Assembly (NCBI GenBank): GCA_002269645.1
Contig: NIVC01001051.1
Coordinates: forward strand, 186,001 to 250,000
From: Macrostomum lignano
Lineage: Eukaryota
DNA length: 64,000 nucleotides
Direction of reading: 5' to 3'
Every line of letters begins with the position of its first letter. The stretch's first letter is position 1. This document shows, piece by piece, positions 4,502 through 24,285 of this stretch. The notes beneath the pieces are model-generated. The model did not search any database, had not been told where the DNA came from, and was given only the letters and a program-made list of their open reading frames with translations. Position numbers and translations under genes: made by a program.

Positions 4502-5698
4502 ATGTCTTATCGCTACTTTCATTCGCAGCGCCGCTCAAGCAACAACAACTGCTACTATGGCATGGCTTATCCGCAGCCGGAGCAGCCCATGCACTACACA
4601 CACAATGGCTACTTTATCTACCAGCATCCGCTCGAGATGGAGTACCAGAGAAGCCGACCGGCTAAGCTGTCGCCCCGCGTTCTGAACCGACGCTTCAAGA
4701 AAGTCACCATCCAGCTGAACGAGAACCGAGTCCTCGTGGTCAGCGTCGCTGTAGGCAAGGGCAACAAGCCGAGCTTGGTGTTCTCGCAGTGCGAGGGCTC
4801 CTACGAGAATCGAACTAGCTCGGTCAACATTCCGGAGGCCCTAGTCGTGCCGTTCATCCAGCAGCTGCACAAGCTGTCGAAGTGGCGACCGTCCACTTCT
4901 GGCAGCCTGCCAGCCAGCCAGGGCCTCAGCCACGAGGACACGGTGTTCAGAGCGCTGCTCGCCTGCCAGAGCGGACCGGAAGTGCCGCCAGAGTCCCGCC
5001 TGTACGCCATCCGGATCGTGGCGGAAGCTCGAGCTCGCGATCCGCACGACCGGAAAGAGCTCGCCGCGGTGTCCATCCCGCTGGAGACCAGCTACCTCAT
5101 GAAGGTGAAAGAGGCTCTCAATGATGTGATTGTGGCATCGGCCGAGTCGCCGCTCTACCACACCAAGTCGCTGCACTGTGCGGACGGCTCTAAATTCTAC
5201 CTAGACATGATCCGCGACGACGAGGCTCACTACCTGAAGGTGTCGCAGGTGACCCGCGAGTACCGGAGCATCATGCACGTGCCAGCCGAGGATCTGGACG
5301 CATTCAAGGACATTATCGAGGCCAGCGTCCGAGCGATGAAGAGCCACCTGGATGAGCACAAGGCCGGCAGCGCCAATTCGTCGGGCTCGTCCAAGAAGCG
5401 TCGCAATCGACAGAGTCGGCGTCGACAGAAGCGCTCGACGGACGGCAAGGGCGGCCAGGAGGCCGGAAACAACAAGGCCAGCGGCGGCAGCGAGTCCACT
5501 GCCAGCGACTGCGAGGAGATCGGCAAAGAGAACGCCAAGCCAAAGCCGGAGCGAAGCGACAACGACACGACGGTCGGCAAGGAGGATGCCGTGGTCGAAG
5601 AGTCGAAGAAAGATCAAGAAGAGCAGAAGAAGGCCGACGACAAAGAAGCGTCCGGCGACTTAACAGCGGCTCCTCCAGCCTCAGCCGCCAGCGAGTAG
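4502..5698 (+). CDS. Intronless Pur-alpha/beta (PUR repeat) family nucleic-acid-binding protein, 398 aa, divergent
   Basis: Open frame from gccATG at 4502 to TAG. Segment KFYLDMIRDDEAHYLKVSQVTREYRSIMHVPAEDLDAFKDII (~5192-5317) matches the PUR-repeat pattern (K-FYLD...FL(K/R)(I/V)S(E/Q)...R..I.(I/V)P.....F). Weaker repeats lie upstream, followed by a basic KKRRNRQSRRRQKR tail and an acidic tail. AATAAA at 6013. Confidence 0.75.
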   Translation: MSYRYFHSQRRSSNNNCYYGMAYPQPEQPMHYTHNGYFIYQHPLEMEYQRSRPAKLSPRVLNRRFKKVTIQLNENRVLVVSVAVGKGNKPSLVFSQCEGSYENRTSSVNIPEALVVPFIQQLHKLSKWRPSTSGSLPASQGLSHEDTVFRALLACQSGPEVPPESRLYAIRIVAEARARDPHDRKELAAVSIPLETSYLMKVKEALNDVIVASAESPLYHTKSLHCADGSKFYLDMIRDDEAHYLKVSQVTREYRSIMHVPAEDLDAFKDIIEASVRAMKSHLDEHKAGSANSSGSSKKRRNRQSRRRQKRSTDGKGGQEAGNNKASGGSESTASDCEEIGKENAKPKPERSDNDTTVGKEDAVVEESKKDQEEQKKADDKEASGDLTAAPPASAASE

Positions 5699-6271
5699 TG
5701 GAACCCGAGACTCCGAGAGGCTGAAGCTGCTCTGTCGCATATTGGCTGCCCACAGCAGCAGATCGAAGTGACACACAACAATTTTCTAGCTAAGCAATAC
5801 CGTACCGTAATTCAAAACCGGATTTCTCACTTTTGGCTGAATTGACAAAGCTTTTTATGACTATAGCCATCAATTTACCAACAATAATTTCAAAAGCACG
5901 CTAATTTAACTTTGTATTGTCAAGGGAAATGCAGGAACGATGCTTGCTAACTTTGCTTTTTCACAGCGCGTGTGTTTTTGTCTTAGCCGAAGCCGAACAG
6001 ACCTTACGATATAATAAATATCACTTTCAACTTTAAATAAAAACGGAAAATTAAAAAATAAAACGGCTGTCTTTTTCTTTGTGATTTCTCTAAAGAAGTA
6101 AATTTATTTTGGATCTTTGAAGTTTTGCTTGCTGAAGGCACCAAGTGAGCGACTAGGCTTAGGAAGTACGAGCGTACAAGCGTACATGCAAGTGAATAAG
6201 CAAAATTAGGACAAATTTTTCAGAGACAAATCTAGCAAGGTATTCGCTTCTTCGATACTTCAGAGGTGACT

Positions 6272-6450
6272 GCCTCTCCCCCCGTTCCTTCACGGGCACC
6301 GCTTCATCCCCCCGTTCCTTCAGGGCACCGCTTCATTCCCCCCCGTTCCTTCAGGGGCACCGCTTCATTTCCCCCGCTCCTTCAGGGGCACCGCTTCATT
6401 CCCCCCGTTCCTTTAGGGGCACCGCTTCATTGCCCGTTCTTTCAGGGGCA
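6272..6450. repeat. ~30-bp tandem repeat (caccgcttcatyccccccgttccttcagggg), ~5 copies
   Basis: Direct inspection of the repeating unit. Confidence 0.85.
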
Positions 6451-6937
6451 AAAGTGTAGTTAAATCAGTTTGCGCGTAAATTTGTCTTTTAAAAATCAGG
6501 AACGAATCACTAGTTACTACAAATTGCACTTTTAAAATAAAAAGTCGATAAACAAAAAACTAGCCGATTAAAATATTCAATTTGATTAAAATGTGTTTTA
6601 AAAATCAGAGTCGCAAGTGCGTGACACGAGACTTTGCGACTGTTTAAGTGAACACTAAATTGAATTGAAAACGGGAAAAAAAGTTAAATATCAAAGTGCA
6701 AATGAAATCTGCTCGATAAAATAGCATTAATATCAGTTTGAGTGACAGCAAAAAATGCCCAGCAGAAACCGACTTTGACTTATTGACAGCATTTCATTCT
6801 GTAGGCGACTACACGGATAACCTTGAATTTTCTATTAATACTTCTCAAAATTTCAATCATGGACAAGTATAGATTCTAAGGACTCCACACTAGCGAACAC
6901 CAGCATCCTACTGTAAGTAGCTTCAAGCGATCGCGAT

Positions 6938-9900
6938 CTACTCTTGATAAACGACAAACACGGTGGCCACAGCGTACAGCGAGTTGTTGTCAAACTGGCT
7001 GCTGACAAAATTGTCTACAGAATCGTCCCACAGACAGCGGCTTGCCATGCTGAGGCCGTGCGGGCCTCTGGCTCCGATGCTGCACAGAGAGATCACCTTG
7101 TAGCGTCCTGCCGGCGACTGCAGCTCCTTCATGCGGCTTCTGATTACCTGCGATGGCGGGGGGTTGGGATTCATCTGGAAGCTGTTGAGTTTCGGATATA
7201 AACTTGTTGGAAACAGCACACGGTTCAGATAAGAAAGTAGACAGTTGTGGAACAGATGGAAAACAGTAAACTCGGAAACAGTAAATTCAAACAAAGTAAT
7301 CCCGGAAATAAATGATTTTGAGACAGATGATCTGAAAACAGATGATTCGGAAACAGTAAATTCGGAAAAAGTAATTTAGACACGGTAATTCGAAATTTAT
7401 GACTCGGAAACTGTCGATTTGGAAACAGATGATCCGGAAACATTCGGAAACAGATGATTCAGAAACAGATGATTCGGAAACAGATTATTCGGAAACAGAT
7501 TATTCGGAAACAGATGATTCAGAAACAGATGATTCGGAAACAGATTATTCAGAAACAGATGATTCGGAAACAGAAGATTCGGAAACAGATGATTCGGAAA
7601 CAGTAAATTCGGAAATAGTAAACATTCGAACACAGTAAACCAGGAAACTGACGATTTTAAGCAGACGATTAAGAAAAAGCAAATTCTGAAAGATATAGTT
7701 AGAAGCAGACGATTTGGTTTGGAAACTGGAAAATTGAAAAAAACAAGTCCATAAAAATAGGAAAAAGCCAGTTCAAGCAGCGAACGTGATGAGTCAGAAC
7801 CGGTCTTAGCGACCGCAAAATCACAAACTCTAATTGGATTAGCAAATCGCCTGTCAAGCTCACCTGGCTAATGCTCTGGCTCATTGTTCGAGCGAATTCC
7901 TCCGCGTAGCTCTCCCGTCCAGGTAGTCCCTGAGAATTTGGCGCAGAACTCGGCCAGCCTGTCCGAGCGAGAACTGGCCAGTGGCCGAGGGGCCGAGCTG
8001 ATAGGTGTTTTCCAGGCGAACTGCGGGGCCCATTGACTGCGCCTGCTGCTGCTGCTCAGCTTCCGCTTGAGCTTGAGACGCGACGCTGATGGAGCTGCAG
8101 CCAGCGCAGTGAGGCGGGAGAATTGATTTTCTTAGACATGAGCTGAAGGCCGGTGGCCTTGGGTCGTCGGTAGGGACACTGGCTTAGTCAAGCAGGGGAT
8201 GTCATGGCCACCTATGACCAACATCCCAGAGTAGAATCCTGGTTCTACTCTCGGTGGGAATCGATGGATCAATTCTAAGTCTGACAAGATCTATACTCAG
8301 CAACAGTCAAAAGTTCCACCCTCCAAATTGCGAAAACTTCACACTCACAATTCAACCCTCAAGTTACGCAACTAAGCCGCCGCGAGGAAGGGAAAGTTGA
8401 TTGACTATCAATACTCGTAGTAAAATCATAAATTTTTTATGCAATATTTAGTTAGAATCGCGATGCGTGTGGGATCCCCTCGCACGCAGAAGTGCGACGA
8501 CTCTGCGGGGCATCCCAATGATGAGGCGGCGCAGAAAGTCCTTTTAGAAGCCGCTCCGAAGCGTTTTCAATGGCATGACGCAGAGCTCTCCGCAACATTC
8601 TATGGTGGATTCTCTTTTCGAATGCCACGTTTTAGGAAGTCCCAGACATACTCGATGGGATTCATGTCGGGGGACCGGGAAGTCCAGCGCAGAGTGCGCA
8701 GCTGTAGCTGTTCCTACAGTTGTTGACTAACAGCATCGGCTTGGTGTGGCGGGGCGTTGTTCCTGGGCTTGGGTCTGCTTAATGTCCAGGCCTGAACCAT
8801 TAAGCAGACCCAAGCCACCCCCAAGCGGCAATAAGCTTTGCGCGTGCCGTAGGTTGTGTCACTCGCAATAAGTGAAAAAATCATCTCGCTTAGTGGGGTG
8901 GAACTTTTGACTGTTGCTGAGTATATGTCTAGGCCATGAGGGTCCATTTCATAGGGCGTGTAGGATCCTTTCTAATTTTTCATGATCAACTCCATAGGTC
9001 ATTCAGGATCAACTCCATAGGTCATTCAGGATCAACTCCATAGGTCATTCAGGATCAACTCCATAGGTCATTCAGGATCCAGTCTAGGTCATACAGGATC
9101 CAGTCTAGGTCATACATGCTCAACGCCGTAGGTCATACAGGATCCACTTCATAGGTCATACATGCTCAACTCCATAGAGAGTATGCACAAATCAAAAATA
9201 TTCATGCATTAAAAACTTCAAGATTGCATTTTATAGACTGTAATATCAAAGAATGCAGGAAATTTTAGATGACCAAAACTTTTGCTAGAAAATAAAAGAT
9301 TTCAGTAGTAGAAGTGCTCAGAAGTTTGACTAGATTCAAGCTAACAAATAAACAAAAACTTCTCTTGTAGTGCAAAACAAAATTAAATAATTGCCCAGAC
9401 TGAACATAAGAATGCAAGACCAAAATAATGAGCAAGTTACAAAACATAACAAAGCATTAAAGACTAATTAAAGAAATGATAAAAACATCATACATGCTTT
9501 TTATTTTAATTGTCACCAAAACCAAAATAGAAATTTTCACTTACTGCAGGCACCCTTTATTATTAAGGGATAGGAGTGTGGCTGAAAAATATTAGCAGTT
9601 CAATTTTAAATAGCAAAAAGCAAGGAACTTAAAATTAGGTATTATGTAACAAAAGCAGATATGCTACTTATAGTCTGTTTACTGGTGTCGAATCTACAAA
9701 CAGGTGTTAGCTGGGCCTTGTTTCTAGTACAATTAATATGTGCTTTGGTTTTGTTAAAAAATGGATTCTTATTGGGTTGTTTATATGAAATAAAAGCCAT
9801 TCAGGCGTTACAATTCAACAACCTGCTATCACTATCATAATCCTCACTGATGAGGCTCCCATCTCTGTAATAGTTAGTTAATCACAAGATTAGTTGGGGA

Positions 9901-10082
9901 TAATGGGGAAATGCACTTTTAAGAAGCTTTGCATACTACACTATAGAAACTTGGGCAACTCACTGCTTGTATTTTCCGCCACCGAAGTGCTTCAACTGTA
10001 CGATGGGTCCCCCTCCTGAAGGAAATGAACTCTGCTTCCTGAGATTTCGAGCAGCTCGATCCTTAGCCAAGTCAGTTGCCAT
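6938..10082 (-). CDS. TCTEX1D1: Tctex1-domain dynein light chain (TCTEX1D1/DYNLT5-like); exons 10082-9964, 8142-7864 (one base missing near 7914-7916), 7147-6938
   Basis: Spliced product MATDLAKDRAARNLRKQSS...VRLENTYQLGP...YLDG[E]SYAEEFARTMSQSISQ/VIRSRMKELQSPAGRYKVISLCSIG...SRCLWDDSVDNFVSSQFDNNSLYAVATVFVVYQE. ENTYQLGP, RYK and SRCLWD..D are Tctex-1 family motifs. Canonical GT-AG sites with matching phases (2, then 0). Confidence 0.88.
7240..7640. repeat. 15-bp minisatellite (ttcggaaacagatga) in TCTEX1D1 intron 2
   Basis: Repeating unit visible; translates as SETDD repeats. Confidence 0.9.
8450..8830 (-). mobile_element. Decayed Tc1/mariner-superfamily transposase fragment (C-terminal DDE region)
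   Basis: Minus-strand translation NNAPPHQADAVSQQL*EQLQLRTLRWTSRSPDMNPIEYVWDFLKR, then after frameshifts LRHAIEN...RRVVALLRARGSHT. This matches the Tc1 motifs DNAxxH, WPxxSPDLNPIE and the terminal 'xRGGHTxY'. It has a stop codon and frameshifts; no TIRs were found. Confidence 0.8.
8985..9175. repeat. 23-bp minisatellite (attcaggatcaactccataggtc)
   Basis: About 8 degenerate copies. Confidence 0.85.
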
Positions 10083-10088
10083 GGGAAT
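10075..10088. promoter_or_regulatory. RFX X-box-like motif GTTGCCATGGGAAT overlapping the TCTEX1D1 start codon
   Basis: 13/14 match to GTTNCCATGGNAAC at the 5' end of a ciliary dynein light-chain gene; function is inferred. Confidence 0.45.
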
Positions 10089-11179
10089 AGATTAATTTAA
10101 ATGCTGCAATAGAAAAGGAACTGTTAGACGTTAGTTTGATTTATTTTAGGAATCACATTATAATACATATGCAGTATAATTGGAGCCATTAGAAGACATG
10201 AAAGAAGTTTTAAAATAAATTATTCTAATTAAAGCGACATGAGCATGAGGATGAGAACATGGACACGACACCATTAATAGAATTGTAAAATACACAATTA
10301 TGAATTATCAAGTAAACAATTCAGTCAAGCTGAGTTCCCATTTAAAGATTTTTTGGCTTTCAGCTTTCAAAAATAATAATTAGAATGCAATGAACTAGAA
10401 ATTTATAAACTGGACAACCGAGTGCCAATACTTAAAAATTTCTGCGATTACTACAAAATTTAGAGAAAAATGGCTAGATTAAATGTTATCAATAGAATAA
10501 TCTAAAACAAGCTTTCAAAATACAAGCAAGAGCTTATAGATGGCAGTACTGTGGTATTAATAGGTCAAAATAATTGCAGGCAGTAGATGCAGTTCTACTT
10601 CTCAGGGCGAATGTTAAATGACAATCGGATGTTACGGTTCAGTAGTAAAAACCAAATCAGGAATAGGCTATTCTCAGATCTAGCCAGTCAAGCTTAGATT
10701 TAAAATCTGCGTTAAATTGTAGTGCAAAATAGGACAATATTGAATTGAGCGCATAGAAGCAAAGTATTGAATTACAAAATTGAATTACGATCGTATATTG
10801 TAAAAAGTATACAAATTTCACACTTAAACTCGTTCCTTATACTTATTTACCTTATCAAAACATAAAAGCAAAAACAAAGTTTTTAGAGAAGTTTTAACTA
10901 TTATTTTTTTCTATTAAAACTAAAATAATAACTTATTGTCAACAAAGTGTTGTTTTTATCAATAGTTATGTAACTGTATTTGTTTTAAGCTACTAAAAGT
11001 TTAAATGAAAGCCGCAGTAAAAATATTTATTTCTGCTTTTTCGTCGACAATATTAGAACTTTATTTGACTTTCGACACTAAGAAACACGTTACTTTAACA
11101 ACAATGTGTTTTTATGCGGATTTAAGTTCGTAGATGGGTCCGATGCATGGTTTCTGTTATGAAAGGATGTACGTACAAA

Positions 11180-11365
11180 CAGTGGCGGATCCAGAGGGGG
11201 GCGGGGGAGCGGCCGCGCCCCCTCTTTTGCCATGGCTGAACTTGCATATAAGGGGGGAGTATTGCAATTTTGGGCTTATTTAGGGCTTATTTTGGGCCAA
11301 CCCAAAAAGTTAGGCCAATCCGCCCGGGACCGCCCCCTTCTTTGAAAATCCTGGATCTGCCACTG
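11180..11365. mobile_element. 186-bp non-autonomous hAT-type MITE
   Basis: 15-bp TIRs cagtggcggatccag / ctggatctgccactg (14/15 match), flanked by a perfect 8-bp TSD cgtacaaa (11172-11179 and 11366-11373). Confidence 0.92.
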
Positions 11366-13298
11366 CGTACAAATTATGTAAGAGACGAACTACATGATTG
11401 CCATGGCTGTGTTTGTGTACCTTTAATGAAAAGTATGGACATTGCATGTAAACAATGTTTTATAGAATTATTTATAGGCGGCTAGAAAACAAAAACAAGT
11501 AAATTTTCACAAACATACATGTACACATGGAATCTCAGTTGTAAAATTTTCTATTTCATGCACGGCTGCTATTTTCCCCAACTAGATCCGATGGACTGCA
11601 ATGATAGGTACTAGCTCTAGCCGCAGGACTTATGCAATGGGTATCCTGCTGGCCGCAGCTCTGCTGGTGCTCGGCGGCCCAGCTCGGTGTCAGGCCAGGC
11701 CGACCCAACGCCGGTGTCTCCAACGCCGCGAATGAGCCGAGCAATTGGCAATTATAAATACGTTTCATTAAGTCGACTCAATGTTTTGCATGTATGAATT
11801 CGATCGAGGATCTGAAAACGGAGTGTTGTGATTAGCGATGCGCGATGCTCTAAAGTCCATATAGCGCTTCATTTCATTCCTGTTGTTTGTTCAAACGTAT
11901 TTTAGGGTTTTGCTGAAGCAATCGGGCTGAAAAAGATCACTTTTTTGTTTAAACCGAAGAAGGGAACTGTAATTTGATTCAAAAAGTTGGGGATTAATTT
12001 GGGACGAGGTGAACAGTATAGTAGTAATAATTTATTTTTTATTAATTGACAAGCCGGTTTACAATCCAAAGGGGCAGTAGTTCTGTAGTAAGTCAACCGC
12101 AATATATGATGAAGGGCCTTCAGTCTAGCATGTAATAGATTGAGTTTGATTGGTCATAAGACCATGCTAGAGCCCCGCAGGAAGATGCGGCCAAAAATAG
12201 ACACAATTAATACGCTTCAAAATAATTCATTTTGAGATACAATTAAAACAAACTTAAGTATTGATTACATTAGATATGAATATATCAGGTTAATTAATTA
12301 ATATTACATTAAAAACTCACAAATGTTATGCTCGAATAATCCATAAAGTATTTGAACGAACTTAACACCGTCACAGCACTATTACTAATTAACAGGATGA
12401 TTTTAAATATTTGCACGTTCCCTAGGAATCTGCGTGGTTACAAAACGTACGTCACATGTCAAAAGAATGCAAAAGTTCTTAAATCGGGGGTCGTGCATTT
12501 TCCGAGAAACAGTGTTTTGTTCAAAAGTCTACTTCAAACGGTCCAATTGACTCTATATCTGTAACAAGGGTATGAAGCGCAAAAAGTTCCATATTCCAAG
12601 CAATGCATACGTATACAGCCATAAATTCTTCCTAGAGAGCTGCGCGCCTCGATTTCCGCATTTCAAGTGCAGAAGCGGTGCAGATTCCAGCAGCATCTGC
12701 ACGCCATTCCATTCCACCTCGGACCTCCTTGGTTCCGAAAACATGACGCGACCCGCGGGTGACTAAAATTAGCGTCAGCCCCCCCCCCCCCCCCCCAGTA
12801 GTTGCGCGAACCTCGGCAGATATAAATTCCTTGCTAAACGCGCAGACACGTGATAAAAGCACCCAGCTGCCGCATGATGCCGGAATTCGGACCCCCTTCG
12901 TGCAGCTGCCTCGGGAACGTCGATCCCCGCAAGTGGATTGGCCGATAAGGCAGTCACGGGACTGCGATCGGCTCTAGAAAGCAAATAAGTCTTCTAAAAG
13001 AGCAATGGGTACTATACAGTGTAATACAAGCGAGTAAAGGGTGACAGAAGAAGCTATTGCACTACAATTTGCACTGTACTGGCTGTGGAGTTGTACATCC
13101 CACACGCCCTTCCAATATCTATATATATATGTAATAGCTTACGTATATTCGACCTATTTTTATACCTATTCTTGCTTACAGAACCGACCCTGCAGATCAG
13201 CTGATTCTCGCGGCTCCCAACCTCACCAGCCAGCCCTATATATCTGCATGCTCTTAGCCAGCAAATAGGGGAGTTCATAGAGCGAACCCATCGTAACC

Positions 13299-13837
13299 AT
13301 GGCGCCAGTTCTTAACGCCCTGCTGCTGCTCCTCACTGGTGTCTCCGCCACCTTGGCCGCTGAACAATTCGTTGAAGCCGGCGACAGCGGCAACTGTACT
13401 AGGCCGAGCCCCGGCCTGCTGCGCCACTGGACCACCCTGGAACTCGCCGGGGTGCCCGTGTTTGTGCACCAGCGCCTGGACCGGCGCGGCCACTTCCTGC
13501 TGGAGCCGCTGCTGTCCCTGCCAACCACCGAGCCCGTCGAGGCCATCATCAACGCCTCGTGCGTCCGGTTCGACCGGCTGACCGGAGTTCACTACCTGAG
13601 CTTTCCCGTGGCTCTGCGAGATGACGAGCTGCTGCACCAGGCCAGGGAGAGGCTGCGGCATGCCGCGCCTCGGTCTGTGGCCTTCCTGCGGCCGGCCGGG
13701 GCCAGCCTGCCGCCTGCGGAGGCCGAGGGACGCCTGCCTGGCGGCTGGAAGATGGAGAGCCTCCGGCTCAGCTCGGAGGGCCAGCTGGGCTACCTGCGAA
13801 TCAACTGCCCGCACCAGCGGGCCTGCGTGGAACTCAG
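13299..13837 (+). CDS. Exon 1: signal peptide + repeat domain 1
   Basis: NCTRP...[11 protein letters not shown]...[10 protein letters not shown]...YLSFPVAL...[14 protein letters not shown]; ends at AG|gcatgt. Confidence 0.85.
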
Positions 13838-16800
13838 GCATGTCCGCGATTATGAACTGCATCCCAATGCCTCATCATGAGGGATCTCGGATCGCAATCT
13901 CAAAAAATCTCTCAGATCTCCCCTTATTCCAACACGGATCCCATCGCAAGAAATCCCAGATACCAACTTAGAAACTCCTATCTCAGGAAATTTCGGACCC
14001 CATCTCAAGAAAATCCATCACGAGTAATCATGGATCATCTAGGATCATCTCAGGAAATCCCAGATCCCATTATGAGATGTCCAAGATCCCATTATGGGAT
14101 ATCCAAGATCCCATTATGGGATATCCAAGGTCCCAATATGAAATATCCAAGATCCCAATATGGGATATCCAAGATCCCATTTTAGAATATCCAAGATCCC
14201 ATTATGGGATATCCAAGATCTCATGATGGGATATCCAAGGTCCCAATATGAAATATCCAAGATCCCAATATGGGATATCCAAGATCCCATTTTAGAAAAT
14301 CCAAGATCCCATTATGAGAAATTCAAGATCCCAGTATGGGATGTCTAAAATCCCATTATGGGACAACTCAACTCCCATAAAAATCGATGCTGAAAAATTT
14401 TTCAGATCCCAGCTGTTGAGTGGCAGCGTTGGGATCTTTGAGCGCTTCCTGCTCCGCCTGGACTCCGCCGTGTCGCCCGACGGCTGCGCCTCCGTTGCAA
14501 ACCTGACCAAGCCGGTGGTGGTGCCCGCCGCCTCGCAGATCGACGTCGCGCACTTCGCCCGCCGGAGCGTCGGCGACGCGTCCGGCCCGCCCGATGTCGA
14601 CGACAGCCGTAACTTGACGGCCTGCTCCAAGCCGGCGCCCCAGCTGGTGCTGTACCGGGATTTCTACATCAAAGGCAGGCCGGTGTTTGTGCTGACGAGG
14701 CGCGAGTCCGTGGCGGCCAGGGCGCCGAGCGAGTTCTGGCTGGAGCCGCTGCTCAGCCTGCAGACCGGGGAGGCGGTCACCGCCCGAGGGTTTCGGAACG
14801 CCAGCGGCTGGTGAGACTTAACTGCTGCATTCGAGATCCCAAATCCCAGATTGACAATTCAGATCATCAATCCTACGTTCTTATCGTAGAATTTTAGTAC
14901 CCAAAATCCTAGTTCCCAAATCCCAGTTCCCAAATCCCAGTTCCCAAATCCCAGTTCCAAAGTCTCAGTCCCCAAATCCCAGTTCCCAAATCCCAGTTCC
15001 CAAATCCCAGTTCCAAAGTCTCAGTCCCAAATCCCAGTTCCCAAATCCCAGATCCCAAATCCCAGATCCCAAATCCCAGATCCCAAATCCCAGATCCCAA
15101 ATCCCAGTTCCCAAATCCTAGTTCCCAAATCCCAGATCCCAAACCCCAGTTCCCAAATCTCAGTCCCCAAATCCCAGTTCTCAAATTCCAGATCCCAAAT
15201 CCCAGTCATAAAACGCTAAATCAATGCTCTGATTTAATTAAAAATCCCAGATCCTAGCTGTAATACCAGATCCTACAGTTTCAAGATCTCTGATCCCTTC
15301 AGCTCCTGAGTTGAAAAATTTGCATAGATCCCCAGATTACTCAATGTGCTGGTAACAATGACATTAGAAAAGGTCTCCCCAAAGTTTACCTGACCCAGTG
15401 CACCGCTCCGCAGGCCCTACGTGCCCCTCCGCCTGAGCCTCCGCCAGTCGGACATCAGAAGCGCCGCAGTGAAGCGGCTGCGACAGCCCAACAGGCCAGT
15501 TCCCAGTCTGCGCTACCTGCACCTCGTCGACTGGCGTCTGGAAGGCCGCAAGCGCCTGCCCGGCTTTAAAGTGGACCGACTGCGGCTGTCCACCAACCGG
15601 GAGGTCGCCCATATCCGGTTGATGGCGCCGAACGACACAGCAGCGGGTGCCAAGGCTGCTGAAGTGCTGAGGTGAGCATTCTCGCGCTTCCTACGAGTAC
15701 TCAGGGGTCCAGCTGGATCGCTAACCCTACCCTAACTCTAACCCTACCCTAACCTAAACCCTAACCCTAACCCCAACTCCTGCCTCGATAGTGTATTTTC
15801 CCGAAAAGCCTACACCTTTGAAGTGTTTTCTAAGAAACGAAATTTAAACCGTTCCACTTGATTTGATGTTGCAAAGCATTTGAAATATTTCAGCCTGCTT
15901 GATACTAACAGTAGAGTATTAGGGTTTTGACTCGAAATTCGTATGTTAAAATAAAAAAAAGTTTTGATTTGAACATTAAGAGGCCAATACACACTCCTTG
16001 TACTTTAGATTTTCGATCATCTCACTCCACACATGTATCTCTGATCTGATTGGATACGCATCAAAGTCAAAGGACACCCACCTCACGCGTCCTGAAATCA
16101 TCTCTAATCTGATTGGATAAGCGCCAAAGTCAAAGGACACCCACCTCACGCGTTCTGAAATCATCTCTAATCTGATTGGATAAGCGCCAAAGTCAAAGGA
16201 CACCCACCTCACGCGTCCTGAAATCATCTCTAATCTGATTGGCCGAGAGCGAACACAGACTAGATTGATCACAGAAACCCCTCCCGAACATCCCAGGCAG
16301 CAGATCGCCGCCAATCCAACTCTGCTATTCGACGCGCTGCAGTTCAGCTTTGCCTTCTCGCCGGACGAGGCGCCTGCCTCCTCTGCGGCGTCCTCATCGT
16401 GCGAGGAGTCGCCAGTCTACTGGGTGCAGCGCAGGCCCATTGTACCGCACCTGTCCCAGTTCCCAGTGTCCGAGCTGCAGCGCCACTGGCAGGCAGATCG
16501 GCCTGGCAATGAGTCCCGCTGTCGCCTGTCGATGCAGCCGCAGGTGGCGAAGGTGGTGAGCTACCGGGGCCAGCCGCTGGTGCTGTGGAAACGGCAGGAC
16601 CATCCAGGCAGTCATTCATCTCAGCTGGATGACTTCCTAATCGAGCCAATCTTCCTGCTGCGCAACGACGGTCTTGAGGCGGCGTTCAGCGTCGGATTCG
16701 ACTACGCCAGATCGGCGCATTTCGTCAGCTGCCGGGTCGACCTGCAGAGCGACGACGCGTTGGCGTTAATTAGGCGGAATTTGACCCACTTGGACAGGTT

Positions 16801-19800
16801 CCGCTCGGTTGCGTTCGCCATGATTGGCAATCTCAGCATCTGGCCGACTGCCAACATCAGCGGCGTGACGGCCGTGGAATTCTACGCCTCCTACAACCAG
16901 CGGGACGGCTTTCTGCGGCTCTACTGCGACCGGCTGGCCGCCTGCGCCGGGCTTAGGTCGGTTTTAAACTGGCTTCCATAGTTACTGGCTCCGATTACAT
17001 TGCCTAGCAACCTGGTATCCTAGCAACCTGGTATCCTAGCAACCTGGTATCCTAGCAACCTGGTATCCTAGCAACCTGGTATCCTAGCAACCTGGTATCC
17101 TAGCAACCTGGTATCCTAGCAACCTGGTATCCTAGCAACCTGGTATCCTAGCAACCTGGTATCCTAGCAACCTGGTATCCTAGCAACCTGGTATCCTAGC
17201 AACCTGGTATCCTAGCAACCTGGTATCCTAGCAACCTGGTATCCTAGCAACCTGGTATCCTAGCAACCTGGTATCCTAGCAACCTGGTATCCTAGCAACC
17301 TGGTATCCTAGCAACCTGGTATCCTAGCAACCTGGTATCCTAGCAACCTGGTATCCTAGCAACCTGGTATCCTAGCAACCTGGTATCCTAGCAACCAAGC
17401 AATCTAGCTCAGAGATTGGATATAACTGCTGTCAGTGTCTGAAAAGTTAAGCAAAATTCGCTGCGGTTAGTGCAGGCTGCTTTTTTTAACCTGACTTTCT
17501 CAACTCTCGACTTGCTTAACTAATCTCCAGGAACTACCTGTCAAAGTCCAGCGAACTTCTGCTCGAGCGCTTGCAAATCAACATCACCATGGCAACGCCT
17601 GACGACGGCTGCCTAGCACCGGAGCCCATTGGCAAGCTGATCCTGGCCAGGCGACATCTCGTAGACCTGGCCTACCTCAGGGAGAAGTCGCCGCCGCGGC
17701 TGGTGTGCGCCGAGGCCGCCTATCCCCGGGTGCAGGCACCGGTGCAGCCGACCGGCTCCTGCCAGCTGGTGCTGCACCGGTCCCGCAACCTCCTGGGCGG
17801 CCAGAGCCTCTTTGTCGAACCGGCCTTCTGCCTGGACCGGCAGCCGCCCACTCTGCACTTTGACTACGTGCGCAACCTGCCCTACCTGAGTCTGCGAATG
17901 GCGCTGGCGAACGATTCCCTGCTTGGCGAAGTTCGCCGAGGCCTCGCGGACTCCGGCGGGACCAGCGACACCGCCGACATCCCGGCGGAGGACACCATCG
18001 ACTTCATGGAGCTGTGGAACCTCCGGCTGAGACCGAGGACCCGGCTGCCGGGACTCGAGGCCGGCGATTTCAAAGTGGCCTTCGATAGGAGCGAAGCCGA
18101 ACTGCGGATTCACTGCCTGAGCGGCAGAGTGTGCAGGACTCTGCAGTGAGCCGGCGCTACCCACTAAATTGTCCTCAATCCAGACCGCTGCGTCTCGAAC
18201 GCCTGGGATGCGGATTCTCGATCCATGGTCCATCGATTATTTTCCTGATCCCTGATCCTTAATTCCTGATCTCTGATCCCTGATCTCTGATCCCTGATCT
18301 CTGATCCTTGATCCCTGATCCCTGATCCCTGATCCCTGATCCCTGATCCTTTATCTTTGATCCCCGATTCGTGATCCCTAATCCCTGATAACCCGATCCT
18401 TGATCTTGATACCGATCCTCTTTCCTGATTTAGATCATCCCGATTCTCCTGATCCCCAATCTGATCCTTGATCTCTATTCCTTGATCCCAATCCTTTATT
18501 CTTCTCAATCAGTCACCATTGGCCCCTGCTCCGCAGCTCGAACATGCTGCAGAACAGCACCCTGCTGCTGGAGAACTTCAACCTCGAGATCACGGCAAAT
18601 CTGCCCAGCTACGATTGCTGGATGCCGCAGCTGTTGCGCAAGCAAATTTTGAGTCGCAGCGCCTCCTACTTCGATTTGAGCTACCTGAACGGCAAAACCC
18701 GCCGCCTCCCCGGCTGCCCTCGGCCCCTGCCGATGCGCCTGTTCAGCGTCAAGTCGGTGGACGGTTGCACCGCCGTGGTGCACAAGCGCGAGGACACCAA
18801 GGCGGAGTTCTACATCGAGCCGCTGTTTTGCTTCAACGGCAGGGTTGAGCTGGGCTTCAACTACCTCACGGGCAGCCCCTACGCCAGCCTGGGCGTCGAC
18901 CTCAGCCGCCAGTCCGTGCTGGACACCGTGACCGCCCAGCTCGCCAATCTAGCGCCCAAGCGGGTGTCATTTCTCCAGGTGCGCAAGGTGAACCTGACTC
19001 GGAGGGACTTGGGCAGCGAGGCCTACCAGCTGGACAGCTTCTCCGCCAGCGTGGACAGGAGCCGGGGCCAGTTCCGGGTGCTCTGCCAGACCTGGGCTGC
19101 CTGCAGGGACCTCAGGTAAGCTGGTGTGGTCTCGGATTGGGATCTCGGATTGGGATCTCGGATTGGGATCTCGGATTGGGATCTCGGATTGGGATCTCGG
19201 ATTGGGATCTCGGATTGGGATCTCGGATTGGGATCTCGGATTGGGATCTCGGATTGGGATCTCGGATTGGGATCTCGGATTGGGATCTCGGATTGGGATC
19301 TCGGATTGGGATCTCGGATTGGGATCTCGGATTGGGATCTCGGATTGGGATCTCGGATTGGGATCTCGGATTGGGATCTCGGATTGGGATCTCGGATTGG
19401 GATCTCGGATTGGGATCTCGGATTGGGATCTCGGATTGGGATCTCGGATTGGGATCTCGGATTGGGATCTCGGATTGGGATCTCGGATTGGGATCTCGGA
19501 TTGGGATCTCGGATTGGGATCTCGGATTGGGATCTCGGATTGGGATCTCGGATTGGGATCTCGGATTGGGATCTCGGATTGGGATCTCGGATTGGGATCT
19601 CGGATTGGGATCTCGGATTGGGATCTCGGATTGGGATCTCGGATTGGGATCTCGGATTGGGATCTCGGATTGGGATCTCGGATTGGGATCTCGGATTGGG
19701 ATCTCGGATTGGGATCTCGGATTGGGATCTCGGATTGGGATCTCGGATTGGGATCTCGGATTGGGATCTCGGATTGGGATCTCGGATTGGGATCTCGGAT

Positions 19801-22800
19801 TGGGATCTCGGATTGGGATCTCGGATTGGGATCTCGGATTGGGATCTCGGATTGGGATCTCGGATTGGGATCTCGGATTGGGATCTCGGATTGGGATCTC
19901 GGATTGGGATCTCGGATTGGGATCTCGGATTGGGATCTCGGATTGGGATCTCGGATTGGGATCTCGGATTGGGATCTCGGATTGGGATCTCGGATTGGGA
20001 TCTCGGATTGGGATCTCGGATTGGGATCTCGGATTGGGGATTGGGATCTCGGATTGGGATCTCGGATTGGGATCTCGGATTGGGATCTCGGATTGGGATC
20101 TCGGATTGGGATCTCGGATTGGGATCTCGGATTGGGATCTCGGATTGGGATCTCGGGATCATTGATCGGATCGGATCTCGGACACACACTCTCCATCTCC
20201 CATCATCCCGCAGCTCCAATCTCTCCGCGCAGCCCTGGCTGCTGTTCGAGCGAATCCAGCTGACAACCTTCATGGCTAACGTCGCCGACTGCGAGCTGTC
20301 GACCGCCATTTACCAGCAGCCGACCTCTGCAGCCAGTGACTTCCGCCTGCCGCTCAAGGCCCTCCGGTTGAAGCTGCCAGCGGTGGGCGAGTGCCCCGCC
20401 GACGAGGCGCCGCGCCTGCTGCGCATCCTGAGCATCGACGGGTGCCCGGTGGCGGTCTACCAGCAGCCCGGCGAGCTGCCACATCAGCGCCGCCTTCTGA
20501 TCGAACCGCTGCTCTGTTTCCATGGCAACAATGCCAGTTCGAGTCTGAGCCGGGGCCGCGACTTTCTCAGCAGCGAGGAGTTCGTCAGCGTCCGGCTGAT
20601 GCTGCGAAGCCACGGCGTGCTGGCCGCGGTGCAGGAGCAGCTGTCGCTGTCCACCTTGGAGGCCGGCTCCCTGCTGCGCTTCGCCGAACTCTGGGACGTC
20701 GGCGTGGCCGAGGAGAGCACTGCGGCGGGATTGCGGGTGGCTCGGCTCGGCGTTGCCGCGCGTTGTGACGGCGAGACAGCGGAGCTGCGAGTAGCCTGCA
20801 GCAGCCGGGCGGCCTGCGAGGCGCTGGTGTGAGATGCGCCGGGTGGGAGCTTGGCTTGATATGGGGGATGATGAAGCTCAGCATCTGTGTAGTGGGATGC
20901 GGAATCTGAGCACATAATGTGAGGTTCGAATTGTGGGATGTGGGGTCTGAGCATAGGATGTGGGGTCTGAGTACAGGATGTGGGATATGAGCACAGGATG
21001 TGGCCCGATCTGAGCATAGGATGTGGGGTCTGAGTACAGGATGTCGGATCTGAGCATTGGATGTGGGGTCTGAGTACAGGATGTCGGATCTGAGCATAGG
21101 ATGTGGGGTCTGAGTACAGGATGTCGGATCTGAGCATAGGATGTGGGATTTGAACACAGGATGTGGGATCTGAGCACGGATGTGGGATATGAGCACAGGA
21201 TGTGGGATCTGAGCATAGGATGTGGGATCTCATCGTAGAATGTGGGATCTGAGCACAGGATGTGGGATCTGAGCATAGTAAGTCGGATCTGAGCATAGGA
21301 TGTGGGATCTGAGCATAGGATGTGGGATCTGAGCATAGGATGTGGGATCTGAGCATAGGATGTGGGATCTGAGCATAGTATGTCGAATCTGAGCATAGGA
21401 TGTGGGATCTGAGCACAGGATGTGGGATTTGAGCACAGGATTTACTGTAGTATTATCCTGTAGTACTATATGTACGTTCGTAGGTTGTTGGATATTTTTC
21501 GAATAAAAAGAACTTTCCGGATGACACGAGAAAGATGAACGACTTCAAGGGATTATCATTAATCCCAGGGTTTGATCTTCGGTTCGGATTAAAAGGAACG
21601 GTGCATCACCCTAACGGATCGCGAACCCTTTACTCTTTAGGATTCTTTTCTTTGAAGCTTAGGCTTCAGACTTTTCAAGTTAATAATTAGATTTCTTTTG
21701 CGAAAACAGCAATTCCGTTGACCGCGTAAAGGTTCTAAAGACCTAATGAACTATAAATATCTCTCGCCATTTCTCTCGCAGTCAAAGCCTCACGGAGGAG
21801 CCCACCGACTACCTTCGGTCGGTGCTGTTCTCGGTGTCCAGCCTCACGCCTTCGCGCAGCTGCTACTTCAAAGCGCCCGCCGCCAAACGGCCCCTCATCA
21901 TCGGCTACAGCTGGGACCGGCGCTGCCGCTACGACAGCCTGGCTGAGTCCGGCGGGACCGCGAAGCGCAATGCCAGCCTCCAGTTGTGGACTGGTGAGAC
22001 CAACTTTGATCTACGAGGGCTGTCCCAAAAGTACCTGCCTGTCACCTGCCTGTCATCTGCCTGTCACCTGCCTGTCACCTGCCTGTCATCTGCCTGTCAC
22101 CTGCCTGTCACCTGCCTGTCATCTGCCTCTCACCTGCCTGTCACCTGCCTGTCACCTGCCTGTCATCTGCCTGTCACCTGCCTGTCATCATCTACTTGTC
22201 ACCCATCTGAAATCTTGCTGTCATTCACCTGTAATCTAGCTGTCATCTATCTGTAGTCTAGCTGTCATCTATCTGTAGTCTAGATGTCATCTATCTGTAG
22301 TCTAGCTGTTATCTATCTGTAGTCTAGCTGTCATCTATCTGTAGTCTAGCTGTCATCTATCTGTAGTCTAGCTGTTATCTATCTGTAGTCTAGCTGTCAT
22401 CTATCTGTAGTCTAGCTGTCATCTATCTGTAGTCTAGCTGTCATCTATCTGTAGTCTAGCTGTCATCTATCTGTAGTCTAGCTGTCATCTATCTGTAGTC
22501 TAGCTGTCATCTATCTGTAGTCTAGCTGTCATCTATCTGTAGTCTAGCTGTCATCTATCTGTAATCTAGCTGTCATCTATCTGTAGTCTAGCTGTCATCC
22601 TCCTGCATTTTAGCTGTCATCCTCCTTCATTTTAGCTGTCATCCTCCTGCATTTTAGCTGCCTTCTATCTGTAGTCTAGCTGTCATCTATCTGTAATCTA
22701 GTTGTCATCCTCCTGTAATCTAGCTGTCATCCTGTAATCTAGCTGTCATCTATCTGTAATATAGCTGTCATCTATCTGTAATATAGCTGTCATCTATCTG

Positions 22801-23572
22801 TAATATAGCTGTCATCCTTCTGTAATCTAGCTGTCATCCTCCTCTAATCTAGCTTTCATCTATCTGTAATCTAGCTGTCATTCTCCTGTAATCTAGCTGT
22901 CATCAACCTGTAATCTAGCTGTCATCTATCTGTCCTCTAGCTGTAATCTAGGTGTCATCCTCCTGTTAATCTAGCTGTCATCTATCTGTCCTCTAGCTGT
23001 AATCTAGCTGTCATCAACCTGTAATCTAGCTGTCATCTATCTGTCCTCTAGCTGTAATCTACCTGTTATCTACATGTTACCTGTAATCTAGCTATCATTC
23101 ATTTGTCGCATACCCGTCATCCACCCGACGTCCCACAGTGCATCGCTGCCACCCGGACGAGTGGACGGCCTGTGAGGTGTCCCGCTCCGGCCGGTCCGCC
23201 TATTTCTTCAGCCGAGGCCTCTCTGACTGGGCCGACGCCCGGCGAACCTGCCGATCAATGGGCGCCGACCTGGCCGTGATTGACAGCCCGGAGGAGAACG
23301 CGGAGGTGTTCGCGCACCTGGTCGGCGCCAGCTGGATCGGCATGTACAGATCCGGCGGCCGGTTCGTCTGGGTGGGCGGGCCGGTCGCTCGCAGCGAAGG
23401 CTACCGGAACTTCGCGGCGGGGACCGAGCAGGCGGAGCTGGACTGGCAGTTCAACTGCGTGGCCATGAGCGGCGTCTCCAGCCTGAGCGGCGCTGGCGGC
23501 GGCGGCAGCGGCGGCTGGCTACCGGCGGCCTGTCACCGACACCTCCGCTTCGTGTGCCAGTATTCCGCCTGA
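13299..23572 (+). CDS. Secreted 1438-aa protein: signal peptide + six tandem ~190-200 aa unrecognised domains + C-terminal C-type lectin-like domain; join(13299-13837,14406-14810,15414-15671,16297-16956,17531-18145,18537-19115,20214-20828,21782-21993,23139-23572)
   Basis: All nine exons join in frame (4317 nt = 1439 codons including the stop) with matching phases (2,2,2,2,2,2,2,1). accATGG start and hydrophobic [20 protein letters not shown]. The same motif series recurs six times. Intron 1 needs a GC donor. Confidence 0.85.
13900..14360. repeat. 22-bp minisatellite with palindromic unit (atccca-tta-tgggat core)
   Basis: Unit atccaagatcccattatgggat recurring every 22 bp. Confidence 0.85.
14406..14810 (+). 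CDS. Exon 2: N-terminal half of repeat domain 2
   Basis: ttcag| acceptor and TG|gtgag donor; ACSKP...IKGRPVFVL...[10 protein letters not shown]. Confidence 0.85.
14890..15210. repeat. 14-bp minisatellite (ttcccaaatcccag)
   Basis: Repeating unit visible. Confidence 0.9.
15414..15671 (+). CDS. Exon 3: C-terminal half of repeat domain 2
   Basis: ccgcag| acceptor and AG|gtgagc donor; PYVPLRLSL...[18 protein letters not shown]. Confidence 0.82.
16040..16240. repeat. 63-bp tandem repeat, 3 copies
   Basis: caaagtcaaaggacacccacctcacgcg... recurring every 63 bp. Confidence 0.9.
16297..16956 (+). CDS. Exon 4: repeat domain 3
   Basis: 660 nt, phase 2-2; RCRL...[11 protein letters not shown]...[10 protein letters not shown]...[14 protein letters not shown]. 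Confidence 0.85.
17003..17397. repeat. 16-bp minisatellite (cctagcaacctggtat), ~24 near-identical copies
   Basis: Homogeneous tandem array. Confidence 0.95.
17531..18145 (+). CDS. Exon 5: repeat domain 4
   Basis: 615 nt, phase 2-2; LFVEPAFCL...PYLSLRMAL...[14 protein letters not shown]. Confidence 0.85.
18235..18500. repeat. 7-bp degenerate repeat (gatccct)
   Basis: Repeating unit visible. Confidence 0.8.
18537..19115 (+). CDS. Exon 6: repeat domain 5
   Basis: 579 nt, phase 2-2; [11 protein letters not shown]...[10 protein letters not shown]...[14 protein letters not shown]|gtaagc. Confidence 0.87.
19130..20160. repeat. 13-bp minisatellite (ctcggattgggat), ~79 copies
   Basis: Almost perfectly homogeneous array filling intron 6. 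Confidence 0.97.
20214..20828 (+). CDS. Exon 7: repeat domain 6
   Basis: 615 nt, phase 2-2; [11 protein letters not shown]...LLIEPLLCF...[14 protein letters not shown]. Confidence 0.85.
20890..21440. repeat. 20-bp minisatellite (aggatgtgggatctgagcat)
   Basis: Repeating unit visible. Confidence 0.92.
21782..21993 (+). CDS. Exon 8: tail of repeat 6 + linker
   Basis: ctcgcag| acceptor and G|gtgaga donor; bridges phase 2 to phase 1. Confidence 0.75.
22035..23095. repeat. Composite array: 11-bp (cctgtcayctg) then 22-bp (tagctgtcatctatctgtagtc) units
   Basis: Repeating units visible in intron 8. Confidence 0.9.
23139..23572 (+). CDS. Exon 9: C-type lectin-like domain, terminal exon
   Basis: C..W...C, AYFF, W.DARRTC...[20 protein letters not shown]......FVC: the long-form CTLD pattern with six Cys. 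Confidence 0.92.
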
Positions 23573-23769: not shown

Positions 23770-24285
23770 CTTGATTCACTGATTCTTGGGGATTCACACA
23801 TTCTTGGAGCATTCACTGATTCTTAGGGATTCATTGATTGTTGGGGATTCACTGATTCTTGGATATTCACTGATTCTTTGGGGATTCACTGATTCTTGGG
23901 GGATTCACTGATTGTTGAGGATTCACTGATTCTTGGGGGATTCACTGATTGTTGAGGATTCACTAATTATTGGGGATTCACTGATTTTTGGGGATTCACT
24001 GACTCTTGGATATTCACTGATTCTTGGGGGATTCACTGATTGTTGAGGATTCACTGATTGTTGGGGATTCACTGATTATTGGGGATTCACTGATTGTTGG
24101 GGATTGTTGGATATTCACTGATTGTTGGGGATTCACTGATTGTTGGGGATTGTTGGATATTCACTGATTGTTGGGGATTCACTGATTGTTGAGGATTCAG
24201 TGACTGTTGGGGATTCACTGATTGTTGGAGATTCAGTGATTGTGGTATTCACTGATTTCTGGATTCAGTGATTGTTGGATTCTGT
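23770..24285. repeat. ~20-bp degenerate minisatellite (ggggattcactgattgtt)
   Basis: Repeating unit visible. Confidence 0.88.

Follow-up and report, generated by a model that had tools for sequence, protein, structure and literature searches.

Six copies of a domain from a new, lineage-restricted family precede a C-type lectin domain in a secreted protein of Macrostomum lignano

The locus described here is a real Macrostomum lignano gene coding for a large secreted protein, in which six tandem copies of a ~190-aa unit are followed by a C-terminal C-type lectin domain (CTLD). The unit is a genuine domain that is a member of no described family and that constitutes a new, lineage-restricted domain family. 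The gene occupies positions 13299-23572 on the + strand of the window, the whole 64-kb stretch of DNA that was analysed, and belongs to the M. lignano locus family Mlig001894, whose sole annotation is hypothetical. As the initial annotation had proposed, nine exons join in frame to a 1438-aa ORF; the joined 4317 nt translate as 1438 codons and a stop, with no internal stop. The exons and the basis for their assignment are as follows.

Exon 1, 13299..13837, + strand: start codon, signal peptide (aa 1-21, 13299-13361) and unit 1 core (translation; unit HMM positions 4-146; only hydrophobic segment)
Exon 2, 14406..14810, + strand: unit 1 tail (helix, LLFE-type strand, Cys207) and initial part of unit 2 core (HMM 145-198, then 2-70)
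Exon 3, 15414..15671, + strand: remainder of unit 2 core, C-x5-C pair missing (A/A) (HMM 66-146)
Exon 4, 16297..16956, + strand: unit 2 tail and unit 3 core (translation, unit HMM)
Exon 5, 17531..18145, + strand: unit 3 tail and unit 4 core (translation, unit HMM)
Exon 6, 18537..19115, + strand: unit 4 tail and unit 5 core (translation, unit HMM)
Exon 7, 20214..20828, + strand: unit 5 tail and unit 6 core (translation, unit HMM)
Exon 8, 21782..21993, + strand: unit 6 tail (helix, strand, Cys1251) and conserved odd Cys1272 (HMM 146-197)
Exon 9, 23139..23572, + strand: long-form CTLD (six Cys, WIGM; QAE and WLP replace QPD and WND) and stop codon (Pfam, PDB alignment)

Seven introns have GT-AG ends and intron 1 is GC-AG, with GCATGT at the donor; introns 1-7 are in phase 2, and the intron after exon 8 is the only one in phase 1. 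Exon 1 carries the unit 1 core from Cys33 to the C-x5-C-x2-L motif at aa 179 and ends at a junction, ELR/SQL, that is the same in the NCBI gene model P0001 and in the ortholog P0002. The unit 2 core is the sole core interrupted by an additional intron, and the replacement of its C-x5-C pair by A/A bears out the earlier remark that repeat 2 has lost its terminal Cys pair. Each cassette exon is phase-2/phase-2 and joins the unit n tail to the unit n+1 core, with exon boundaries shifted by ~55 aa with respect to the structural domain; exon 8 contains the unit 6 tail and no linker. The equation of one exon with one repeat as a structural boundary was rejected because the C1-C6 cysteine pair crosses the exon junction and the six units are complete in the Cys-a to Cys-d phase.

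A locus of this kind could be an artefact, in which exons of separate genes have been mis-joined or a pseudogene is decaying in a repeat-rich region. Satellites crowd the introns, the GC donor of intron 1 is non-canonical, and P0001 lacks the initial 151 aa. However, 1438 codons are read without a stop, and the independent P0001 model has junctions identical to those of the window gene from aa 152 on. In addition, P0002 is a full-length, colinear ortholog (51% identity) that is encoded as a single 1462-aa ORF on an intronless 4758-nt contig (SRR30276812) and covers both the unit 1 region and the signal peptide; judged by its absence of introns, this contig is probably a transcript. Because the ortholog is colinear on an intronless contig, the whole architecture belongs to one message, and the one-gene architecture assumed at the outset stands. 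Each unit is 44-60% identical to its positional ortholog, compared with 16-30% to its sister units. In a second comparison, the orthologous units share 50-63% identity, which points to sequence constraint; the CTLD, 42% conserved between the orthologs, falls below the units. The artefactual explanation is highly improbable and has largely been refuted already. A homolog search with aa 1-1294, which excludes the CTLD, returned P0001 and P0002 only.

The N-terminal signal peptide, recognized in the initial annotation, is the only hydrophobic segment of the protein; there is no TM segment, and the product is predicted to be soluble and secreted. The protein of ~157 kDa is Arg-rich and basic (pI 8.8) and contains 17 N-glycosylation sequons. 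Its cysteine count is even, and C88 and C1272 are conserved odd cysteines.

All motif strings quoted in the initial annotation are found in the protein, and its count of six tandem repeats was upheld. The six units match each other by blastp with pairwise E values of 3e-17 to 3e-4. An independent profile, built from paralogous proteins only and excluding the window sequence, recovers exactly six domains from the window protein, with i-E values between 4e-19 and 1e-36, and gives no match in 200 shuffles of the protein. The unit positions according to this profile are as follows.

Unit 1, aa 41-212
Unit 2, aa 247-430
Unit 3, aa 474-649
Unit 4, aa 680-854
Unit 5, aa 882-1056
Unit 6, aa 1078-1252

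With a rotated-phase HMM, all six units span HMM positions 2-198 of 198, and no additional unit was found beyond the gene in any of the six frames of the 64-kb window. The Glu-Pro of the central strand motif, [FL]x[LIV]EP, is invariant in 25/25 units and no other residue is. The units of the window protein conform to the family definition, with a query-free profile match, the [FL]x[LIV]EP motif and the C1-C6, C2-C3 and C4-C5 pairs. An origin of the unit by internal duplication was rejected on comparison of its N-terminal and C-terminal halves by hhalign (probability 0.3%).

Cysteine co-variation over the 25 units implies three putative disulfides per unit, C1-C6, C2-C3 and C4-C5: C2 and C3 are both present or both absent in 25/25 units, as are C4 and C5, and C1 and C6 are jointly missing in P0006a, P0007a and P0011. 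The AlphaFold2 model of unit 5 (aa 878-1070) is confident, with a mean pLDDT of 83.8, a pTM of 0.78 and all five models at 81-84, and predicts an alpha/beta fold with three helices. A model of units 4 and 5 together, computed from an alignment (A3) in which MAFFT had register-shifted some rows, has low scores (pLDDT 65.5, pTM 0.51), and its linker is disordered (inter-unit segment below 50).

The initial annotation had been unable to assign the repeat to a known family, and searches of sequence and structure databases agree. In the whole-protein Pfam scan, Lectin_C alone is matched. When the 25 units were scanned singly against Pfam, no significant match was obtained: the lowest E was 0.035, for an unrelated family, and no two units matched the same family. 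An hmmsearch of PDB sequences with the 25-unit profile (A2) gave 0 matches at E<=10, and a Foldseek search of PDB folds with the pLDDT-84 model gave no match (best E 0.053, TM <=0.22); the hits to LuxS, ribosomal protein S24e, Fab and kinase structures were set aside as noise (TM <=0.25, E >=0.05). That the unit lacks a known fold holds with respect to the PDB only; BFVD contains one borderline match, an uncharacterised Medusavirus protein (E 1.4e-4, TMq 0.46).

When 1.84 billion proteins (1.84e9 representatives) were searched exhaustively with a profile, the unit appeared in only 13 clusters. All clusters with a source name are from M. lignano and the others are unlabelled environmental or SRA contigs. 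The unit is known from Macrostomum alone, and the new extracellular domain family that had been suspected is real. The paralogs surfaced only through this search. A signal peptide and one or two units are followed by a fibrinogen-related domain (FReD) in at least six further gene families of M. lignano; Fibrinogen_C is matched by P0003, P0005-P0008, P0010 and P0011. Three paralogs lie in tandem on NIVC01000142.1 and have the identical phase-2 intron after C-x-x-L. Since the unit precedes a FReD in the paralogs and is followed by the same phase-2 intron, it is an exon cassette with alternative lectin-type heads.

The C-terminal domain was correctly recognized as a CTLD: Pfam Lectin_C (PF00059) is matched at aa 1324-1435 with 37.9 bits (cutoff 22.6, E 3.3e-9) over profile positions 4-106 of 107, and P0002 also gives a CTLD profile match. 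In PDB sequences, the domain matches CD23 and ASGR1, to which it aligns with cysteines 1332, 1401, 1426 and 1434, the long-form pair 1298/1306 and the WIGM core; the long-loop region holds a Gly/Ser-rich insertion. The canonical Ca2+/carbohydrate motifs (EPN or QPD, and WND) are absent: QAE aligns with the QPD of ASGR1 (1dv8) and WLP with its WND, and in P0002 the WND is replaced by WVK. Because the canonical sugar site is replaced, lectin activity cannot be assumed from the name of the domain and, judged from these motifs, is uncertain.

Taken as a whole, the locus is probably best explained as an intact, expressed gene for a cassette-built, secreted recognition or bridging protein of six units and a CTLD. 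The phase-2/phase-2 cassette may have permitted both tandem duplication to six copies and joining to alternative C-terminal heads, the CTLD here and the FReD in six or more families of paralogs. The protein would work extracellularly as a recognition or bridging molecule, whose C-terminal head would bind the ligand, for this non-canonical CTLD not necessarily a sugar via Ca2+. The six units, each held together by up to three putative disulfides (C1-C6, C2-C3, C4-C5), would line up as a long glycosylated array that acts as a spacer for the head and probably supplies further surfaces for binding or assembly; they are individually conserved rather than interchangeable. We infer a recognition or bridging role as the likeliest, on the same footing as the array role and any immune function. 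The new family and the single gene of the initial annotation stood, and its “multivalent recognition, adhesive or effector scaffold” is not established: the FReD fusion of the unit in paralogs speaks for recognition, and the missing canonical carbohydrate site, with QAE and WLP, speaks against simple sugar binding. The searchable literature and supplements hold no report of expression, localisation or binding for the gene or its paralogs; Mlig001894 and six paralog identifiers appear in no main text and not in the searchable supplements of four M. lignano transcriptome papers, and of the only two papers in which “fibrinogen-related” and “Macrostomum” both occur, neither has a title about a Macrostomum gene family.

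Alternatively, the protein could have a structural part in some secreted material (adhesive, mucus, eggshell or cement, or seminal fluid). The units would then supply cross-linkable bulk, and the CTLD would anchor the material to glycans or other proteins, without specific recognition. Its large size and its repetitive, glycosylated, Arg-rich and basic character would suit such a role, as would the Thr/Pro-rich, mucin-like repeat (DVPSATT) at the N terminus of P0002 and the possibility of inter-chain bonds through C88 and C1272; CTLDs also occur in known flatworm adhesive proteins (PMC6410801). However, the units keep their own identity between species, and the paralogs are small, with an architecture (one or two units and a FReD) that is typical of soluble recognition proteins. 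Many structural proteins have homogenised repeats, unlike these units. In addition, “lectin” and “fibrinogen” are absent from the main text of a prostate in situ screen. A structural role is unlikely, if still worth weighing. It is rather improbable that the unit itself is the functional module, a ligand or small-molecule pocket or an enzyme-like domain that the CTLD or FReD merely targets or anchors. The invariant Glu-Pro, the better conservation of orthologous units than of the CTLD and the six specificities that six non-identical units could provide are consistent with this proposal, but neither Pfam nor the PDB, searched by sequence and by fold, shows an enzyme or binding fold that the unit resembles, Glu and Pro do not make a catalytic-type set of invariant polar residues, and the pair could be structural alone.

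If the recognition or bridging interpretation is true, Macrostomum invented its own extracellular domain and used it as an exon cassette before two different lectin-type heads, a clean second case of the “accessory domain plus swappable lectin head” design, of which FREPs and CREPs in molluscs and collectins and ficolins in vertebrates are the examples so far. With a confident predicted fold that has no PDB counterpart, the unit merits a Pfam entry and a structure. Its function is directly testable, since M. lignano is amenable to RNAi, in situ hybridisation and transgenesis. The significance is bounded because orphan domains confined to one lineage turn up often where phyla are poorly sampled and because the function is one that we infer.

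Among known systems, the CTLD superfamily (PF00059) offers a comparison that spans only 10% of the protein. The C-terminal 144 aa retain the WIG motif and six cysteines in the long-form arrangement, with CD23 and asialoglycoprotein receptor 1 as the nearest solved relatives, and resemble CTLDs that do not bind carbohydrate. The M. lignano adhesive proteins Mlig-ap1 and Mlig-ap2 are, similar to the window protein, large, secreted and repetitive, and come from the same species; they are reportedly built of known modules (vWD, TIL, TSP-1 and Lys/Arg-rich repeats). The paper on these proteins associates them with C-type lectin domains (PMC6410801). Neither of the two is among the 13 unit-carrying clusters.

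Collectins and ficolins are soluble extracellular proteins in which a collagen stalk carries a CTLD or a fibrinogen-like head, with EPN/QPD and WND as the Ca2+/sugar ligands in collectins. Similar to these proteins, the Macrostomum genes pair a common N-terminal stalk module with either a C-type lectin or a fibrinogen-like head. The main differences are that the stalk would consist of globular disulfide-bonded domains, with no collagen Gly-X-Y run or heptad coiled-coil neck evident by eye in the 1438 aa and no Pfam collagen match, and that the window CTLD lacks the EPN/QPD and WND ligands of collectins.

The gastropod VIgL proteins (FREPs, CREPs and GREPs of Biomphalaria glabrata) are secreted and place one or two N-terminal accessory domains before a FReD, C-type lectin or galectin head (PMC5433772). 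As in VIgL, a single unit type stands before the head, which is a CTLD in the window gene and a FReD in the paralogs, these proteins are secreted with the head at the C terminus, and the FReD-type Macrostomum genes occur in tandem clusters. Unlike in VIgL, the accessory domain is not IgSF, with no significant Pfam Ig match for any unit and a predicted alpha/beta fold with three helices, and the CTLD-type protein has six units instead of one or two. The likeness is an analogy of architecture and not homology, and implies no somatic diversification, immune induction or pathogen binding. It is possible, though doubtful, that the unit is a genuinely new fold at the core of flatworm-specific humoral recognition receptors (unit plus FReD, six units plus CTLD), in which the non-interchangeable units would themselves add ligand specificity and which would be of independent origin but convergent with snail VIgL.

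The nine exons of the window gene, rebuilt from the raw sequence, join to 4317 nt and encode an open reading frame of 1438 codons in which the sole stop is terminal.

Exons of the window gene (reconstruction of the reading frame)
13299-13837, + strand, exon 1
14406-14810, + strand, exon 2
15414-15671, + strand, exon 3
16297-16956, + strand, exon 4
17531-18145, + strand, exon 5
18537-19115, + strand, exon 6
20214-20828, + strand, exon 7
21782-21993, + strand, exon 8, encoding the tail of unit 6
23139-23572, + strand, exon 9

Splice sites are GT-AG in seven of the eight introns and GC-AG in intron 1, whose GC donor (GCATGT) lies at 13838-13843 and whose junction (ELR/SQL) recurs in the NCBI model and in the ortholog protein sequence, which confirms it. 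Introns 1-7 are in phase 2 and intron 8 is in phase 1. The motif strings quoted in the initial annotation are all found in the 1438-aa translation. Since the only strongly hydrophobic 19-mer lies at the N terminus, a soluble secreted protein is predicted. Its mature chain has a computed mass of ~157 kDa, a pI of 8.8, 17 N-x-S/T sequons and 38 cysteines.

Between the tandem arrays, the exons form GC-rich islands. Seven of the eight introns each contain their own long array, with a repeat unit that differs between introns, and a further array follows the stop codon. Intron 5 (18146-18536) has short GATCCCT-like repeats by eye, under the score threshold used, and intron 3 carries a short CCCTAA-type run at ~15725-15775 (telomere-like, the complement of TTAGGG), distant from the contig ends.

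Tandem arrays of the window gene
14053-14363, intron 1, 22-nt unit
14904-15206, intron 2, 14-nt unit
16037-16242, intron 3, 63-nt unit
17003-17396, intron 4, 16-nt unit, 24.6 perfect copies
19130-20156, intron 6, 13-nt unit, 79.5 copies
20936-21441, intron 7, 20-nt unit
22033-23072, intron 8, 11+22-nt units
23773-24278, 3' flank, past the stop codon, 18-nt unit

Three other open reading frames were noted in the window. The first, at 4466-5698 (+), encodes 410 aa with a sub-threshold match to PurA (ssDNA/RNA-binding; 23.5 bits versus a cutoff of 25). Downstream of the lectin-like gene, the frame at 31869-32969 (+) has a partial TIR_2 match that stays under the Pfam cutoff (aa 3-82), then a SAM domain that exceeds it (aa 171-232), and is a possible exon of a TIR/SAM signalling gene. 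The third, at 57871-60189 (-), is an unbroken frame of 772 aa with no Pfam match at E<=1e-3, possibly a single-exon gene or else an ORF of a mobile element.

A homolog search with aa 1-1294 of the window protein returned two proteins. P0001 is the NCBI [quoted passage not shown], which UniRef lists as "C-type lectin domain-containing protein"; over aa 152-1438 it differs from the window model only by a 2-aa indel, and thus uses the same junctions, the GC-AG intron included. At this indel (20751-20756, the codons for R1202-C1203), unit 6 of the window protein has an extra Arg-Cys relative to P0001 (GVAARCDGE versus GVAADGE), an allelic or homeologous difference that adds an unpaired cysteine. 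The ortholog, P0002 (1462 aa, 51% identity), is colinear with the window protein from end to end and contains the signal peptide, unit 1, all junctions and the C-type lectin-like domain (CTLD). P0002 comes from a 4758-nt Logan contig of run SRR30276812 with one unbroken ORF and short flanks. Since the M. lignano gene has eight introns (~5.9 kb in total) and this contig has none, the contig is most simply read as an assembled transcript, from a related species. That the exons might belong to separate genes, the alternative named in the initial annotation, is therefore contradicted both by the single intronless ORF of P0002 and by the junctions shared with P0001. An artefact or pseudogene reading of the gene is essentially excluded. 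Between its signal peptide and unit 1, P0002 also carries a mucin-like, Thr/Pro/Ser-rich heptad-like repeat (DVPSATT x ~7; aa 28-95, ~280-480 of the contig DNA) that is missing from the window protein.

The repeat is a real structural domain. In blastp comparisons the segments defined by the exons hit one another at E 3e-17 to 3e-4, and tblastn recovers the repeat-to-repeat relations at the DNA level as well. When the register is shifted to start ~10 aa ahead of the first Cys and end just ahead of the next first Cys, six complete units result, each spanning positions 2-198 of a 198-position profile.

Units of the window protein in the shifted register
aa 22-243, unit 1
aa 244-465, unit 2
aa 466-671, unit 3
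aa 672-877, unit 4
aa 878-1070, unit 5
aa 1071-1294, unit 6

In a non-circular test, a profile made from paralog units alone, without the window sequence, made exactly six domain hits on the window protein (i-E 4e-19 to 1e-36) and none on 200 shuffles of it. The Glu-Pro of the strand motif is invariant in all 25 aligned units, and six conserved Cys columns (C1-C6) co-vary pairwise in the same alignment: 18 units have both C2 (G-C) and C3 (EPxxC) and the other seven have neither, C4 and C5 (C-x5-C) are jointly present or jointly absent, and three paralog units have lost both C1 and C6. This pairwise co-variation implies C1-C6, C2-C3 and C4-C5 disulfides. Each exon encodes the tail of one unit and the core of the next; C6 falls in the following exon, which puts exon and structural domain ~55 aa out of register. 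The unit as an internal duplication was considered and rejected.

AlphaFold2 modelled unit 5, with a 25-row alignment, at a mean pLDDT of 83.8 and a pTM of 0.78 (81-84 across all five models), giving about twelve strands and three helices, with pLDDT <50 only in the final 20 residues. Foldseek of this model against the PDB gave no match at E<=1e-3 (best E 0.053, TM <=0.22), and the unit profile matched no PDB sequence at E<=10; the modelled unit thus appears to have no known fold among solved structures. With Lectin_C as the sole Pfam family in the window protein (aa 1324-1435, 37.9 bits versus a cutoff of 22.6), these results support the earlier suggestion of a new domain. BFVD yielded a single borderline match, to a Medusavirus stheno protein that is uncharacterised (E 1.4e-4, TMq 0.46). 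For two units together AlphaFold2 reached a pLDDT of only 65.5, a low-confidence model in which the segment between the units is disordered.

Both fold and family make the C-terminal domain a CTLD, with a long-form six-cysteine framework and a WIGM motif; among solved structures, CD23 and asialoglycoprotein receptor 1 (ASGR1) are its nearest relatives. Alignment to ASGR1 shows QAE in place of the QPD sugar/Ca2+ motif, WLP in place of WND and a Gly/Ser-rich insertion in the long loop, so that the domain does not carry the residues that define Ca2+-dependent carbohydrate recognition. The P0002 CTLD likewise lacks WND.

An exhaustive HMMER search of the repeat profile against 1.84 billion representative proteins gave 13 clusters at E<=1e-3; those with a named source are all from M. 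lignano, and the rest are short Logan or JGI/IMG contigs. Seven clusters (P0003, P0005-P0008, P0010/P0022 and P0011) combine a signal peptide, one or two units and Pfam Fibrinogen_C, the fibrinogen-related domain (FReD). Three unit-plus-Fibrinogen_C genes stand in tandem on M. lignano NIVC01000142.1, and their introns match those of the window gene in site and phase, two nt past the codon after C-x-x-L. As an exon cassette of phase 2/2, the unit has thus undergone multiplication and fusion to two different lectin-type heads. Within an 18,012-nt stretch of that contig (301229-319240), the trio, with two units per gene, lies at about 1819-3998, 6046-8175 and 9976-12009 (mutual identity 80-90%); the flanking genes are a Rhomboid gene and one that matches the Pfam families NACHT (faintly) and AAA_16 (weakly). 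Units in the same position share 44-60% identity between the window protein and P0002, against only 16-30% for sister units, and the two CTLDs are 42% identical. By these comparisons the six-unit array is old and not homogenised, and the constraint on it is no weaker than that on the head.

Signals for secretion, modular units held by disulfide bonds and a CTLD or FReD at the end are most consistent with a soluble extracellular recognition or bridging protein. The head would supply the binding site, and the array would supply reach and probably also extra binding or assembly surfaces. Two odd cysteines, C88 and C1272, are kept in the ortholog, and covalent assembly could run through them. The size of the protein, its basic charge and the mucin-like N terminus of P0002 would also suit a structural component of some secreted material, a reading we consider unlikely. 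That the unit itself is an effector, as the invariant Glu-Pro and the higher conservation of units than of head might suggest, seems more improbable still. Judged from sequence, the multivalent recognition, adhesive or effector scaffold proposed in the initial annotation is plausible, with the soluble recognition or bridging role preferred here. A literature search found no expression or functional data on the gene.

The unit family merits a Pfam entry and a structure, and M. lignano allows experiments on it. Its closest analogy is the gastropod VIgL family, in which IgSF domains are followed by a fibrinogen, C-type lectin or galectin head (PMC5433772). Both share the logic of an accessory domain joined to a lectin-type head, but the accessory domain of the window protein is unrelated to IgSF, and the protein is therefore not a VIgL member. 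The idea of one stalk with two heads is likewise common to collectins and ficolins, which use collagen, whereas the window protein has none. The unit represents a new lineage-restricted extracellular domain family within a known kind of modular secreted protein.
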